The translations under genes and the position numbers were made by a program. A stretch of DNA of 63,901 nucleotides, the filler included, from Choristocarpus tenellus KU-1152 (taxonomy: Eukaryota > Protista > Phaeophyceae), in assembly GCA_964200185.2 (NCBI GenBank). It is 14 parts of 14 records of this genome, joined end to end, with 100 filler letters (N's around TTAATTAATTAA, not from the genome) between each part and the next. Parts side by side here need not be neighbours in the genome. Positions count along the whole stretch, not along the records: positions 1 to 12,981 come from CAXNAD020001621.1; 13 more parts are not named here. The stretch is one strand, 5' to 3'. The notes below the pieces were generated by a model. That model saw nothing but the letters and a program-made list of their open reading frames with translations, was not told the DNA's origin and ran no database searches. Position 1 is the first letter of the stretch. Each line of letters starts with the position of its first letter. This document shows, piece by piece, positions 104-8,510 of the stretch.

Positions 104-3100
104 CGTTCAAGACGGTGCTCCCACAGGTTCGGACCAAGTTCCTCGAGCATGATTTGTACACTGAGCTGAATGACACGATCTGCCACTCCATCTGAACCCT
201 GTGTAGAAACAAAACAGAAACAATATTTTTTGTTTTATTTTACTGGAAGCAGTGAGAGAGCACGCAGACCCTACTCCACTACTCCCACTGGCTCTTTCTT
301 TCCTTGATATGAAACAGAATCATGAGTTATCTATTGGTACTGCCCTTACTCCAATAGTGTCATCAATGATCATTCTCATTATCAAGTCATGATTCCCATT
401 TTGCTTTGTTACTTTACTGAGGTGTACCCCCACTCTCTCATGTAAGCGACAAAGCTCACTGATCACATTAGATAGTACAATCAAGTTGATTCACTACATA
501 ATTAATGCAAACAAAAGTTTTGTATAACCAGCTATCATCATCAAGAAACAACAGCAAGCACAAGAGATAATAAAACTAAAGGTGAATACAGGTCATAAAC
601 ACTCTGAGAGGCAGCACCTGGAACTGTTCACGAACAAGGCGAGACCCATGAACCTCCAGGAGTTCAAACAGCTCCAAAGATCGCACCAATGCCAGCTTCA
701 TTATCTCGCCCAGACCATTTACAACATTACGCTCATCCTTTTGCCACAAGCAGGGGTTTTATATCAAGGTGGGAGTCAAAGGGGAGTAATGTGGAGGTGG
801 ACAGTGATTATCAGTCGTTATGATGAGCATTCTTGTATAGACACAGACACCTCTCACGCCTAAAAAACTTGACATGACTCTCATAAAACACTGTGACATT
901 TCCTCAGGAAGAAAAAAATATGTGCTACTTTTATTCCAAGAAGTAGGGATAAAAATACAATCCGTGGCATCCATGATATTTGGCAAGTTCTAGCGCTTTA
1001 TAACTTCCAGAATTTACTCCATCATTATCAGCAGCAATTATTATTCTCTCCTTTTTCTGATATGTAATTACCTATATTATTCACTCCCAATGAGCATAAT
1101 ATTTTAGCATCTATTCCGGCTTTCTTAATAGAAAGTGCAGTCCCTACACCTTCTGCAATTATAGTAATATCTGATTTATCTGCCTTAGATATTTCCACAA
1201 ATGAACCAGAGGTGTTAGGCAAGGGGTTTCCAATGACCTGTGAAGCGATGAAGGACTTATCCAGGAAGGCGCCGATGGGGGCATAGAAGGTTCCAACCCT
1301 GTTCTTTTGAGGACCCATGGAGCACGAGCAATAATCCACACCATTTTTCACTCCAACACTGGCATCCACCAGGGCAAGGAGGGTAGTGGGCACACGGATG
1401 AATGGGACACCTCGGCGATACAGTGATGCAGCCATCCCAACTATATCCAAGAGGACCCCTCCGCCAACAGCTAGGACAGGTTCCCTACGTCGAAGGCCAA
1501 AAATGCACAGCTCCTCCAGAATCTTATCCACTGCCTCCATGCGCTTATTTGCCTGTTACACAAAAATCGTGGGGGGGCAGGGGGGCCTTCAACCTGTAAG
1601 CTTCACACAAAAAGTGATGCACATATATAATATATATATACTCTAGCACAAAAAAGGATGAAATTATCTTGTTCTTCCCTGCTAACTTGTTACTATCGCC
1701 ACTGCTGGCCACAATGTTGACTATTGTGTCTGTTGTGGTTAAGAAATTATCAAATACATCCGATCATGCATGCATACGGAATTTCACCTCCTCGCCAGGC
1801 AGTACAACAAAGTGCGGCTCCACCCCATGCTGCCTGATATTTGCTACCATCTTGGGTCCGTAGAGCTTGTGCACCGCCTCATCTGTAAAAAAAAGAACAA
1901 TGTTATTGATAAAACGGGAATGGCATCAGTAGAGCAGGTTAATGACAACGGTAGGAGGTAAAGGTGGTCAAAAGGAATGGTATTAATTGGAGGTACAAGA
2001 GGGTTACACAAAATTTACATGCACAAATTTCCATCCAGATGTACTTGGCGGTAGGTGGGATAATTTATCCACACGGCAAGTTTCTGTCGTGTTTTACCCC
2101 CTTTATTTGCTGGCTCACCCGCCATCAAGGGTACTCCTTGAGAAGATCGCTCCTTCAGGAAGGAGCACCACAACAAACGATTCGCCTCATCCCATGCTTC
2201 CCACCTCTTGTCGAACAGATCAGGGTTAGCTTTTCATACAGAAAGAAATCGTGCTAAGATCAAGGGTGAATGGGATGTCGAAACACATATGAATCCCATC
2301 AATAAATGTGAGATCCTGGCCGTTTTATTGGTGCAGATTTGGTTCAAAAAGAAAAAAAGGGTAACCCAGTGTTCTCAATGTTTCTTTTTTATCATGTCCC
2401 CACCCCAATCAATCTCAATATCCAAGAGGACTACTGCAAATGACATACTCCATCGTAGGTTTTTGGGTTGGTCGGATTTGAATACCTTTCAAAATGAGGT
2501 AGCAAAGGTTAAGGTCACAATGAAGCCTTCCAATTTAGTGTCTGATGACCTTGAGATCAACCCTCCTCTACAGAAGTTCTACAGTACGTGCCACACCTTA
2601 CATGCCATACTTTCAACAAAGCGACTAAGATCCTACTGTGCAGGCCTTCCTGTGCACACTCACCTATGACGATGAAACGACGTTTAGGTCCATCCTTAGG
2701 AAGAAAGTGCGTGGACAGGACAGTTGAATTTGCTGAGAGCATATTGGGACAAAGCTCCACATCGTACTGTATTGGAAGGTCAAACACATTCCTCCAGCCC
2801 AACACCTCTCTATGCGGCCCTCTGAACACAAGAACATTGTCTGGAGCACGTGCCAACGGTTCGGCTTGCGAGGTATAACCGTTGGTCGACCGGAATGGGT
2901 TGAACGAGGTCTCTGTAGCATGCATTGCTGGAGCACTTTGGGTAGAGATGTGGTGTTCACAACACACAGTGGGGATGGGAAGATCGGAAGGTTAATGTTG
3001 CGAGTATTGTTCGGGTGAAGAGGTATTACCACAAAAGCATTCTGTAAAGCAACCAGCGAGTTGTGGCCTGATGAGAACAACAAAGCACGATTTCTGCACA

Positions 3101-7001: not shown

Positions 7002-8510
7002 CTACACTGCTGTTGATTCTTGTCCCGAATGGTGCTTCTGATTTGCATACCTCTTTGCCATTATCAATCGTTCTGTCTCGAAGTCCCCCGCATCATGGTA
7101 ACCCCTTGCCAATGGCCTATAGCTCTTCAAGTTCATTTTCAACCCTGCTGCAAGACCCTCATCCAGCAATGCATGTGCCTGCCTTAACTTCCCGGCCTTG
7201 GTGCAGGCCATGATTGCCGCATTGTAGCATTTGACATCAGGGTTCACACCAAGGGACTTGGCCTCCTCGAGGATTTGCAAGGCGTGCTCCCATGCCCCCT
7301 CCTTTCCACATGAGGTTATTACTGAACTGAACGTAACAATAGTAGGAAATAGGTCCTCCTTCTGCATCTCCTCAAGGAGGAGGAGAGCACGCCTCCATTG
7401 ACCCCCGAGGCTGCACGCATTGATCGCCTCAGTGTAACAGTGGACATCCAATGGAACGTCAGTAGATCGCATCTCCTCAAGCAGGGAAAGAGCTCGCTCA
7501 ACCTGTCCACCCCTACCGCAAGCACAAATTGCCGCAGAGTAGCCAAATCTATCAGGGGAAATTCCCTCTGCCTGCATGTCATCCAGCAAGGAAAGAGCAC
7601 TCTGCCACTCTCCTTCCTTGCTCAATGCTCTCATCGCCACAGTGTAATGGACAATGTTTGGGCTGATCCCTGCCGCACGCATCTCAGTCAACAGGGAAAG
7701 AATTGATGAGGAAGGGGCACGACCTTTACTGCACGCCGTGAGGGCAGCGCTGTAGCAGAAAACGTCGGGACACTCCCCTCGTTCCTTCATCTTCGTAAGG
7801 ATTTTCAAAGTTTCCATCCATTGCCCTTCCCTTGCAGTTGCGGTCATGACGCTGCTCCACATGAATATGTCCACCCGCTTGCCATTGTCCAAGAGGTTGT
7901 CCAATGTTTCAACAGCCTCTTGCCACTCTCCTTTCTTCCCAAGCACACCAACTTTTCGCACGAACGCCTTCGATTGCTCAATCCTTTGGCTCTTCTCGGC
8001 CCTGACGCCCTTGCGACCAGTAGTGGACCACTTTCCATCCCTCCCTTGAGTTCGCTCCCGCCTTCCGCCTTCACTCTTTCTTTTTTCATTCCGCCCACCA
8101 CTGCCTCCCCCACCACTTCTGCCCCATTCCCTACGTGCATCTTCCTTGTGGGTAAATGCCTGGCGTCGTCTTGGAGGAGTTCTCCTGGAGTGACTAACAC
8201 CTACCGGCTGCGACACCTCGCGAGTCTTCGACACTTGCACAATATTTCTGGATCCTTGGCCTTTCACCCTTCCCCTATTACCCGTATCACCTTCTGAATA
8301 TGTGAACGTCCTCTTGCCTTGTAGGACCTGAGCATTATGGTCGACTACCGAAGGATGTAGGGAATAGTCTTCGCGATGTTGATACTCAAGAGAAGCAGTC
8401 CGATGTCCTCGGCTGGATCCAGCATAGGAAATCCATTCTAGAAAATTGCCACTGGCTGATGCAAAGGCATGGCGGCACACGTTGACGCGCAAACGCGAGA
8501 GAGGAGTCAT
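7002..8510 (-). CDS. Pentatricopeptide repeat (P-class PPR) protein, 502 aa, intronless, probably organelle-targeted
   Basis: About 9 tandem 35-aa motifs (e.g. IVHYTVAMRALSKEGEWQSALSLLDDMQAEGISPD). The Arg/Ser-rich, acid-poor N-terminus MTPLSRLRVNVCRHAFASAS resembles a transit peptide. Confidence 0.92.
   Translation of the reverse strand: MTPLSRLRVNVCRHAFASASGNFLEWISYAGSSRGHRTASLEYQHREDYSLHPSVVDHNAQVLQGKRTFTYSEGDTGNRGRVKGQGSRNIVQVSKTREVSQPVGVSHSRRTPPRRRQAFTHKEDARREWGRSGGGGSGGRNEKRKSEGGRRERTQGRDGKWSTTGRKGVRAEKSQRIEQSKAFVRKVGVLGKKGEWQEAVETLDNLLDNGKRVDIFMWSSVMTATAREGQWMETLKILTKMKERGECPDVFCYSAALTACSKGRAPSSSILSLLTEMRAAGISPNIVHYTVAMRALSKEGEWQSALSLLDDMQAEGISPDRFGYSAAICACGRGGQVERALSLLEEMRSTDVPLDVHCYTEAINACSLGGQWRRALLLLEEMQKEDLFPTIVTFSSVITSCGKEGAWEHALQILEEAKSLGVNPDVKCYNAAIMACTKAGKLRQAHALLDEGLAAGLKMNLKSYRPLARGYHDAGDFETERLIMAKRYANQKHHSGQESTAV

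Follow-up and report, generated by a model that had tools for sequence, protein, structure and literature searches.

In the brown alga Choristocarpus tenellus, a 232-bp stretch within an intron is very probably dead DNA of a Rickettsiaceae-like intracellular bacterium that now resides in the nuclear genome, a reading that was tested within the assembly. The stretch occupies positions 979 to 1210 (minus strand) of the window, by which we mean the whole 63,901 nucleotides of DNA analysed, and is a piece of a bacterial traA gene comprising the end of a DUF7146 domain and two thirds of a Toprim_3 domain. The insert is most likely without function. Together with other Rickettsia-like fragments in the same genome, it suggests a symbiosis with a bacterium, either in the past or still existing today.

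A traA fragment within an intron of a cyclase gene

The gene that received the insert encodes an EEVS-like sugar-phosphate cyclase. A family search using the exon at 1238-1552 returned the DHQ synthase family only, and the best solved structure for this exon is ValA (4P53), residues 112-206. When the two flanking exons were compared separately, each with its own search, they were found to abut exactly between ValA residues 208 and 209, as expected from the earlier note, which had placed the bacterial stretch in a GT-AG intron between in-phase host exons. The first exon exhibits 94-95% identity to its orthologues in Discosporangium, Ectocarpus fasciculatus and Laminaria, and the downstream exon 82-85% identity to brown-alga orthologues. 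Within the assembly, both flanks of the insert consist of host exon and intron residing on the same contig (C1621). The features of this region are as follows.

1554-1553, minus strand: acceptor AG before the first exon, read off the sequence
1238-1552, minus strand: host exon of the EEVS-like cyclase (DHQ_synthase family; PF01761, E 3e-28), ending ...FLDKSFIASQ
738-1237, minus strand: phase-0 GT-AG intron of 500 nt containing the traA fragment (GT at 1237-1236, AG at 739-738)
1211-1237, minus strand: first 27 nt of the intron, of host origin, GTCATTGGAAACCCCTTGCCTAACACC; no donor similarity upstream of 1210
979-1210, minus strand: inserted traA fragment, 232 bp, from phmmer, blastn and the domain map of the intact relative P0001 (see below)
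1151-1153, minus strand: GAA, which still encodes the conserved glutamate of Toprim (IIAEG), positioned from the alignment
1142-1144, minus strand: GGG codon, a Glu-to-Gly change in ETALS by comparison with L082
1047-1048, minus strand: location of the 2-nt deletion that puts the AEG and DND halves of Toprim in different frames, from alignments to L082
1021-1029, minus strand: GAT AAT GAT, coding for the second acidic motif of Toprim (AADNDG), which no longer shares a frame with the first half (translation; compare KIIIAADNDG in Megaira TraA)
1028-1030, minus strand: TGA stop closing the exon read-through ORF 1028-1540, from the ORF listing
738-978, minus strand: last 241 nt of the intron, of host origin, with host-like G+C and no donor or TraA similarity
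618-737, minus strand: downstream host exon, DERNVVNGLGEIMKLALVRSLELFELLEVHGSRLVREQFQ (4P53 ValA residues 209-244, E 7e-7)
971-987, no strand: left copy of a proposed direct repeat, sharing its sequence with the final 9 nt of the insert; attributed to chance
1206-1223, no strand: right copy of the proposed repeat, across the 5′ junction; judged to be chance

Minus-strand translation of about 979-1210 yields SGSFVEISKADKSDITIIAEGVGTALSIKKAGIDAKILCSLGVNNIGNYISEKGE and, following a change of frame, IIIAADNDGVNSGSYKALELAK. These 78 codons are the window's entire share of traA, and the MobA/MobL relaxase and RecD-like helicase domains are absent from the window. The corresponding bacterial sequence is L082 11609-11842, or residues 1427-1504 of P0001. 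A phmmer search of 1.84 billion proteins gave a best match with 93% protein identity (E 3e-20), and blastn aligned the insert to a bacterial contig of run DRR496536 with 86% identity over 234 nt. The similarity lies far beyond chance. Exact-protein look-ups with two ORFs of the window produced no match. The description of this stretch as AT-rich, about 230 bp long and encoding Toprim wording with one frameshift proved accurate: its G+C is 33%, versus 41% for the remainder of the intron, and both blastn and a global alignment to L082 place the sole frame break at the 2-nt deletion at 1047/1048 relative to the nearest intact relative. Because this deletion divides the AEG and DND motifs between two reading frames, the insert cannot form a functional Toprim domain. 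The Glu-to-Gly change (GAG in L082) affects the ETALS motif adjoining the catalytic AEG; every other copy, whether bacterial or from this genome, has the glutamate or keeps the motif. The IIAEG glutamate occupies an invariant column of the TraA alignment.

Both acidic features of Toprim_3, the glutamate (..AEG..) and the DxD motif, were found as the earlier note had recognised them. The profile scan that it proposed gave a divided outcome, since the two pieces of the insert score 18.8 and 14.2 bits against Toprim_3 (PF13362), under the gathering threshold of 27.2 bits; they nevertheless align onto the Toprim_3 domain of the intact relative (residues 1443-1532), which itself scores 51.2 bits. 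On these alignments, the insert is a fragment of a Toprim_3 domain, the whole domain not being present.

The insert begins 27 nt inside an intron whose position is also occupied in E. fasciculatus (399 nt) and in the brown alga of run SRR23274480 (202 nt). Creation of the intron by the insertion was rejected because its position is common to other brown algae. The intron start GTCA is common to the Discosporangium orthologue, whose contig stops 100 nt into the intron. As anticipated for an empty orthologous site, the matching intron contains no traA sequence in either E. fasciculatus or the SRR23274480 alga, both of which are distant relatives. At the nucleotide level, CTAACACC rejoined to TATCAT matches the E. 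fasciculatus intron at 13 of 14 positions, the introns being otherwise too diverged to align. A match of this quality was reached anywhere by 5 of 300 shuffles and across the junction by none of 300; identified post hoc, it is suggestive of an empty site. No second allele or paralogue lacking the insert was detected at the DNA level in the assembly.

The earlier note had further proposed that the insert is bracketed by an imperfect direct repeat of 17-18 nt, a claim that did not survive analysis. The repeat was not detected by a repeat search, and the best local alignment of the two copies (TTTGGCAAG/TTAGGCAAG) has a score of 7, which is equalled by 17% of random pairs with the same spacing and by 14% of shuffles. 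Its interpretation as a target-site duplication was discarded, given that the left copy (971-987) overlaps donor-derived sequence ending at 979. Alignment and repeat tests revealed neither microhomology nor a target duplication at the junctions, and hence the repair pathway described below is one that we infer.

Nearest relatives and placement of the donor

The nearest relative of the insert is an intact TraA of 1825 amino acids (P0001), encoded on the DRR496536 contig and bearing MobA_MobL, AAA_30, DUF7146 (residues 1331-1432) and Toprim_3 (residues 1443-1532) domains, in the same order as in the TraA proteins of Rickettsiales amplified genetic elements (RAGEs) and plasmids. Against TIGR02768 (Ti-type TraA), P0001 scores 295.6 bits, under the 590-bit cut-off despite the presence of MobA_MobL and AAA_30; judged by its domain content, it is a TraA-like protein and represents the long form found in Rickettsiales, which carries DUF7146 and Toprim at its C-terminus. 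The TraA of Megaira polyxenophila plasmid pPCS148 (AP017966.1) carries the same C-terminal wording, including SGSFVEVS, ITIIAEGLETALSVKQA, ILGSLGISNIKNY and KGEKIIIAADNDG. The donor-like contig is 15.6 kb long with 33% G+C; its traA adjoins TraD-like and TraT genes, and its cargo includes a group II intron reverse transcriptase, ProQ and a methylase. A RAGE would comprise an integrase and F-type type IV secretion genes in addition to TraA and TraD; neither an integrase nor an F-type secretion gene occurs within the bounds of these 15.6 kb.

P0001 shares at most 51% identity with any copy from a representative GTDB species. The best GTDB hit was the Megaira of Cryptomonas SAG 25.80; a cryptophyte as host, considered on account of this hit, was rejected, since a phycobiliprotein gene is absent from the assembly. 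All 43 of the 43 confirmed GTDB loci belong to Rickettsiaceae, other Rickettsiales, Holosporales or unclassified MAGs (one labelled Saccharibacteria), in a scan whose pattern was derived from Rickettsiales and Holosporales sequences; the plasmid tblastn and phmmer searches are free of such bias. In the tblastn search, which covered 72,556 plasmids, the best matches were Paracaedimonas, the Megaira TraA and a Rickettsia endosymbiont. The named relatives are all Rickettsiaceae (Megaira, Tisiphia, Rickettsia) or Holosporales, and in trees the insert falls within a Rickettsiaceae-type clade that is divided from Holosporales by a 100/100 branch. These sequence relationships assign the donor a Rickettsiales/Rickettsiaceae origin, with the gene sitting on a mobile element, a taxonomy based mainly on mobile-element genes. 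The view in the earlier note that the stretch is bacterial and resembles the Rickettsiales-type TraA (relaxase/helicase/Toprim) is therefore borne out by tblastn, phmmer, the GTDB loci and the trees. In addition, an rpoB piece from the same algal genome, compared with 251 Alphaproteobacteria, placed Megaira first by a narrow margin; the rpoB pieces would weakly back the Rickettsiaceae placement.

Related fragments elsewhere in the genome

The assembly is derived from short reads only and has an N50 of 6.8 kb. Its nuclear G+C is 44%. A limited set of probes revealed Rickettsia-like fragments, 45-350 bp in length, on 30 contigs or more, the one bearing the traA insert among them. Nineteen DNA matches (45-330 bp, 71-96% identity) on 17 contigs cover all parts of the 15.6-kb bacterial contig, and at the protein level there are nine TraA and four TraD fragments, with at least two types of TraA represented among the fragments of this genome. 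Three fragments derive from rpoB of the Rickettsiales or alphaproteobacterial type, two of which contain stop codons. Such stop codons could not be borne by the single rpoB of a live bacterium. At least ten fragments other than the traA insert lie mid-contig with at least 1.5 kb of non-bacterial sequence on either side, and several others are located at contig ends. Where copies overlap, they diverge from each other by 7-13%. The past Rickettsiales association suggested in the earlier note is supported by these fragments, which occupy at least 29 contigs besides that of the insert and include the rpoB pieces with stops.

Differences from the bacterial relative are distributed over the three codon positions as 8/3/16 in the insert and 76/48/134 over all fragments. 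Given this bias towards third positions, a large part of the divergence could predate the transfer, and the same may hold for the frameshift. Copies of traA on mobile elements are often pseudogenes within bacteria, and for this reason a frameshift cannot on its own be taken as proof of nuclear decay. Damage to the insert, which the earlier note took as an argument for nuclear residence, is present, but it does not by itself carry that argument.

Two other candidates were set aside. A host repeat acting as the carrier of the fragments was rejected, as the similarity shared by flanking sequences corresponds to a common host MITE, a short transposon of the non-autonomous type. An apparent rickettsial 16S fragment on contig C13979 proved to be mitochondrial DNA, an insert of 369 bp that matches the mitochondrial rns gene at 97% identity. 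Limited probing of the genome for additional material, along the lines proposed earlier, recovered more Rickettsia-like fragments and no assembled 16S of a live symbiont, the full-length bacterial-type 16S sequences in the assembly being those of the plastid and mitochondrion only.

The matches recovered amount to approximately one fragment per kb of probe (19 for the 15.6-kb contig and three for the 4-kb rpoB). Extrapolation from this density raises the possibility, which we hold tentatively and at somewhat less than even confidence, that the genome contains hundreds to thousands of short fragments spanning the whole genome of a Rickettsiaceae-like endosymbiont.

Origin of the insert and its implications

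The insert derives from traA, which encodes the relaxase-helicase-Toprim protein of a conjugative element, and its landing site lies 27 nt inside a pre-existing intron of the cyclase gene. DNA leaking from bacteria alive or dying in the algal cytoplasm may have been ligated by end joining at a chromosomal double-strand break, the same route by which pieces of mitochondrial and plastid DNA reach nuclei. Given the intronic site and the intactness of both splice sites, the insert is presumably spliced out and drifting neutrally. As one among many scraps, it would form part of a joint record of an association with such a bacterium.

An origin in the assembly process, in which reads of a culture bacterium or of another library were misjoined into algal contigs, deserves consideration for a fragmented short-read assembly in which some fragments are found at contig ends. 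There are also signs of carry-over between samples of the project: along 2467 nt, the plastid rbcL region of C. tenellus shows 100% identity with a contig of the 'Ectocarpus sp. 12' assembly. Ectocarpus itself as the host, an idea prompted by this contig, was rejected on the nuclear G+C of 44%, among other properties of the assembly. We nonetheless regard such an artefact as improbable: it requires two exact false joins 232 bp apart, in the same intron and on the same strand, between consecutive exons, and it is at odds with the ten or more further fragments embedded mid-contig, with the stop codons in rpoB, with the divergence among overlapping copies and with the lack of any 16S-bearing bacterial contig in the assembly. 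A second alternative is conjugative delivery straight into the nucleus, in the style of Agrobacterium T-DNA, by a bacterium living free or on the algal surface; the insert would then record a mobile element and no intracellular symbiosis. Relaxases of the TraA type guide DNA through type IV secretion systems, and the fragments found so far are mostly genes of conjugative elements (TraA, TraD, TraT and cargo). Such a bias is to be expected, however, when most probes are element genes and the elements are multi-copy. The chromosomal housekeeping gene rpoB is also represented, the pieces, tiny as they are, derive from regions throughout the element and not from a single oriT-anchored strand, and the close relatives of the element all reside in obligate intracellular Rickettsiaceae or Holosporales, all of which makes the conjugation route very improbable.

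Use of the insert by the host, as an alternative exon, a C-terminal extension of the cyclase or a regulatory element, is suggested by its proximity to the 5′ splice site and by its orientation. It lies on the sense strand in frame with the upstream exon, creating an ORF of 170 amino acids, just as the earlier note had explained the tail of ORF 1028-1540. An arrangement that is both sense and in frame has a chance of about 1 in 6, and read-through would truncate the enzyme at ValA residue 208 of 420, leaving it without its C-terminal domain. With the Toprim fold disrupted by the frameshift, the insert absent from the orthologues and the other fragments scattered without a common context, we consider a host function scarcely credible.

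The reading that we favour, bacterial DNA captured by the nucleus, has parallels in other systems. Nuclear copies of mitochondrial and plastid DNA (NUMTs and NUPTs) are alike in fragment size and in their presumed entry by end joining, whereas the source here is a bacterium instead of an organelle. The insert and its companion fragments appear comparable in kind to the Wolbachia-type nuclear insertions (nuwts), which occur in arthropods and filarial nematodes, often in introns or intergenic regions, and persist as short degenerate pieces in Wolbachia-free filariae. Like nuwts, they represent non-functional DNA of a Rickettsiales endosymbiont scattered in a host nucleus and can be read as a fossil of symbiosis. 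They differ in that the donor is of the Rickettsiaceae type (on the Megaira/Tisiphia/Rickettsia side), the host is a brown alga, a stramenopile, and the pieces are all 45-350 bp in length, with no large block seen. In Volvox carteri strain EVE, the nuclear genome contains a rickettsial block of roughly 9 kb with four genes, which Kawafune et al. (2015; PMC4324946) interpreted as having been acquired from a former endosymbiont. Both cases involve Rickettsiaceae DNA in an algal nucleus, but the green alga carries a single block and the brown alga many scattered scraps.

For ochrophyte algae, a 2026 preprint lists only two clearly documented cases of specialised intracellular bacteria of this kind, together with sequences from a single Ectocarpus assembly, and the literature that we searched contains no report linking Choristocarpus with Rickettsiales or describing such a symbiosis in its lineage. 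The integrated fragments indicate that a bacterium of this kind lived intracellularly in this lineage and passed DNA into the germline genome. The bacterium may still be living in the culture, and the 'endosymbiont' sequences noted in another assembly of the same project may in fact have come from it; Rickettsiales-like sequences in sister assemblies may be carry-over. Gene predictions and horizontal-transfer screens performed on this assembly will pick up the fragments. A full catalogue of them could permit partial reconstruction of the donor, dating of the association and a test of how foreign DNA enters brown-alga chromosomes. If the peppering does extend to a whole bacterial genome, it would constitute a shotgun fossil record of a symbiosis in an early-branching brown alga.

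The intron and its insert

The features concerned, all on the minus strand of the window, are:

~1552-1238 (-), exon of the 3-dehydroquinate-synthase family (Pfam PF01761, E 3e-28)
1237-738 (-), GT-AG intron, phase 0, 500 nt, with the GT at 1237-1236
1210-979 (-), traA fragment, 232 bp
737-618 (-), downstream exon

The closest solved structure for the upstream exon is the 2-epi-5-epi-valiolone synthase ValA (4P53, residues 112-206), with DDGS (5TPR) ranking behind. Orthologues named Discosporangium mesarthrocarpum, Ectocarpus fasciculatus and Laminaria digitata share 94-95% identity with this exon. The host is a brown alga, which upholds the 'algal' label of the earlier note. When the two exons were compared with ValA one at a time, the downstream exon matched residues 209-244; the pair therefore abuts exactly at ValA 208/209, and the exons flanking the intron are contiguous on the enzyme, which needs nothing from the intron. 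The clean GT-AG intron described in the earlier note is thus borne out, as is the frame relationship reported there: the exon frame continues beyond the GT into an AT-rich stretch reading SGSFVEISKADKSDITIIAEGVGTALSIKKAGIDAKILCSLGVNNIGNYISEKGE and ends at a stop at 1030-1028, and another frame of the same stretch reads IIIAADNDGVNSGSYKALELAK. The odds of an in-frame, sense-strand arrangement are roughly 1 in 6. Read-through into the insert would yield a truncated enzyme. Elsewhere in the window, a 502-aa intron-free ORF (7002-8510, minus strand), whose translation shows by eye pentatricopeptide-like repeats in the C-terminal 300 residues, looks like an ordinary host gene, and the ~20 consecutive C residues with which the contig begins (1-26) probably arose as an end artefact of sequencing or assembly.

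At the identical codon boundary, introns of 399 nt and 202 nt are present in E. fasciculatus and in a brown alga from run SRR23274480, respectively, and neither contains traA-like sequence. The insertion consequently did not create the intron, which predates it. In this assembly, the host intron holds a piece of a bacterial gene that these relatives lack. Without the insert the intron would measure 268 nt, similar to the upstream intron of the same gene (~240 nt, read from the sequence). The relatives' introns are too diverged for an empty site to be recovered at the nucleotide level. The rejoined site, CTAACACC/TATCAT, shares 13 of 14 bases with the intron of E. fasciculatus, a level reached by 5/300 shuffles anywhere in the intron and by 0/300 spanning the junction, which is only suggestive of an empty site. 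The bracketing direct repeat that had been proposed must be abandoned: it was not among the repeats detected, the best local alignment of its two sites has a score (7) that 17% of randomly drawn window pairs and 14% of shuffled sequences also reach, and the left copy overlaps bases derived from the donor. The alignment to the bacterial contig L082 shows no microhomology at the 5′ junction.

A Rickettsiaceae-type donor element

Toprim_3, the profile put forward in the earlier note, was the sole Pfam match when the two frame pieces were searched alone, although its score lay under threshold. Broader comparisons identify the fragment as Rickettsiales-type traA. In a tblastn search of 72,556 plasmids, the top matches were Paracaedimonas acanthamoebae plasmids, the TraA of Megaira polyxenophila pPCS148 and a Rickettsia endosymbiont of Culicoides (E ~5e-6), with Legionella TraI a distant next; positions 1210-979 align motif by motif with Megaira TraA residues 1084-1184. 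Using one genome per GTDB species, a pattern scan confirmed 43 loci, all in Rickettsiaceae, other Rickettsiales, Holosporales or unclassified MAGs (one of them Saccharibacteria-labelled). A phmmer search of 1.84 billion proteins returned P0001, an intact 1825-aa TraA with MobA_MobL, AAA_30, DUF7146 (1331-1432) and Toprim_3 (1443-1532) domains, at 93% identity over residues 1427-1480 (E 3e-20). Its gene lies on L082, a 15.6-kb contig of run DRR496536 with 33% G+C, beside genes for TraD-like, TraT and ProQ proteins, a methylase and a group II intron reverse transcriptase. At the DNA level, 1210-979 corresponds to L082 11609-11842 with 86% identity; the single frameshift noted earlier is a 2-nt deletion at 1047/1048 relative to L082. 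The embedded fragment cannot encode a Toprim domain.

In a tree of the Toprim region, a 100/100 branch splits a Rickettsiaceae-type clade, which includes the fragment, from Holosporales; within that clade it joins Megaira, one Tisiphia copy and aquatic Rickettsiaceae MAGs in a subclade supported at 97/83. P0001, as an intact proxy, is placed likewise when 357 columns are used, and its identity to any GTDB representative is at most 51%. The donor element was therefore of Rickettsiaceae type, from a lineage unsampled among species representatives.

Further fragments in the nuclear genome

In the Phaeoexplorer tables (supplements to bioRxiv 10.1101/2024.02.19.579948), the C. tenellus assembly is short-read, with 163,990,365 bp in 27,308 contigs (0.4395 G+C), a plastid of 120,356 bp, a mitochondrion of 32,342 bp, and 27,310 contigs under accessions CAXNAD010000001-27310. 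The version searched here totals 164,143,064 bp in 27,310 contigs, of which C1 is a red-type plastid genome (120,357 bp) and C71 is mitochondrial. The tallies that follow are lower bounds, from few probes in a fragmented short-read assembly.

More Rickettsiales-like fragments, for which the earlier note had proposed a scan, do occur: all probes together located such pieces on at least 30 contigs. Short DNA-level copies of the window fragment occur on C7505 (93%) and C3999 (87%); on C7505, a MITE-related element (by eye) immediately adjoins the copy. The Megaira TraA probe found at least 9 fragments on at least 8 contigs, and the Megaira TraD probe at least 4 fragments. The entire 15.6-kb bacterial contig gave at least 19 matches (45-330 bp, 71-96% identity) on at least 17 contigs, derived from genes and spacers along its whole length. 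By extrapolation, hundreds or more fragments may be present genome-wide. Individual cases are as follows:

C2457:172-772 (L008), second-type TraA helicase segment
C3759:7536-7803 (L009), second copy of this segment, DNA 86% identical to the first
C23724:1949-2067 (L091), composite insert, non-adjacent donor segments joined directly
C4607:182-303 (L094), composite insert, likewise
C647:13413-13727 (L117), rpoB fragment matching Megaira RpoB, with stop codon(s)
C16841:1770-1910 (L119), rpoB fragment matching Megaira RpoB, with stop codon(s)
C7107:1166-1258 (L120), rpoB fragment, 90% identity to Megaira over 30 aa versus 56% to the plastid gene

The TraA fragments fall into two types, the first resembling P0001 and the second nearer Megaira pPCS148. 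The C2457 and C3759 copies share ~60% protein identity with the latter but only ~28% with P0001; they represent the second type, whose source was either another element or another donor. Besides the plastid gene and eukaryotic polymerase exons, the Megaira RpoB probe detected at least 3 fragments on nuclear contigs; those on C647 and C16841 (2/3) contain stop codons and do not match plastid rpoB. The nucleus therefore also holds housekeeping DNA of the bacterium. Among 16S genes of bacterial type, full-length copies in the assembly are confined to the organelles. The 16S-like sequence found on C13979 was ruled out as bacterial; it is a 369-bp NUMT of the mitochondrial small-subunit rRNA (~640-1010, L022; 97.3% identity), showing that organelle DNA, too, enters this genome as similarly sized pieces. 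Eukaryotic small-subunit rRNA is matched by C9714 at 863 bits and, much more weakly, by C5273:1-1291 (L025) at 312 bits; the C5273 stretch may represent either contamination or an rDNA copy that has decayed.

One host MITE, a non-autonomous short transposon about 180 bp long whose inverted ends read CAAAGTATCTGGGGGG...CCCCCCAGATACTTTG, is abundant and was seen on 7 of ~38 nuclear contigs examined:

L015:2866-3045, MITE copy
L003:707-870, MITE copy
L081:2003-2148, MITE copy
L008:1-69, MITE copy
L006:3050-3158, MITE copy
L090:1-51, MITE copy
L089:2206-2247, MITE copy
L002:~1240-1520, MITE-related element, by eye, absent from the MITE search matches

The plastid rbcL region on C1 (L105:1855-4321) and CAXNAL020000915.1 (L107), a 29.5-kb contig of the 'Ectocarpus sp. 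12 AP-2014' assembly (GCA_964200275.2), show 100% identity across 2467 nt that take in the spacers, which looks like carry-over from one sample of the project to another. A 2026 preprint describes Rickettsiales-endosymbiont-like sequences in that assembly, which may likewise stem from C. tenellus material.

Decay and probable mode of capture

Differences from the bacterial relative at codon positions 1/2/3 number 8/3/16 for the window fragment and 76/48/134 for all fragments. It follows that much of the divergence accumulated in bacteria, while the gene was under selection, and that L082 was not identical to the copy actually donated. For neutral decay since the insertion, the rate at second positions (~7%) sets an approximate upper limit. 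Because much divergence arose in bacteria, the traA frameshift is not itself proof of nuclear decay, for which the rpoB stop codons are better evidence.

Organelle DNA is captured at chromosome breaks by end joining, and DNA of cytoplasmic bacteria was most likely captured in the same way here. The composites, whose donor segments are 190 bp apart in the bacterium or changed in order, fit end joining of several fragments at one break. The intron would still be spliced, the insert presumably having no function. With the exception of the direct repeat, the initial observation and its main interpretation hold. Comparable cases are the Wolbachia nuclear insertions and a rickettsial block in Volvox carteri (PMC4324946). 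The aspect most deserving follow-up is the genome-wide scale of the fragments; the traA insert itself extends a known phenomenon, nuclear insertion of Rickettsiales endosymbiont DNA, by a new example and to a new host group.
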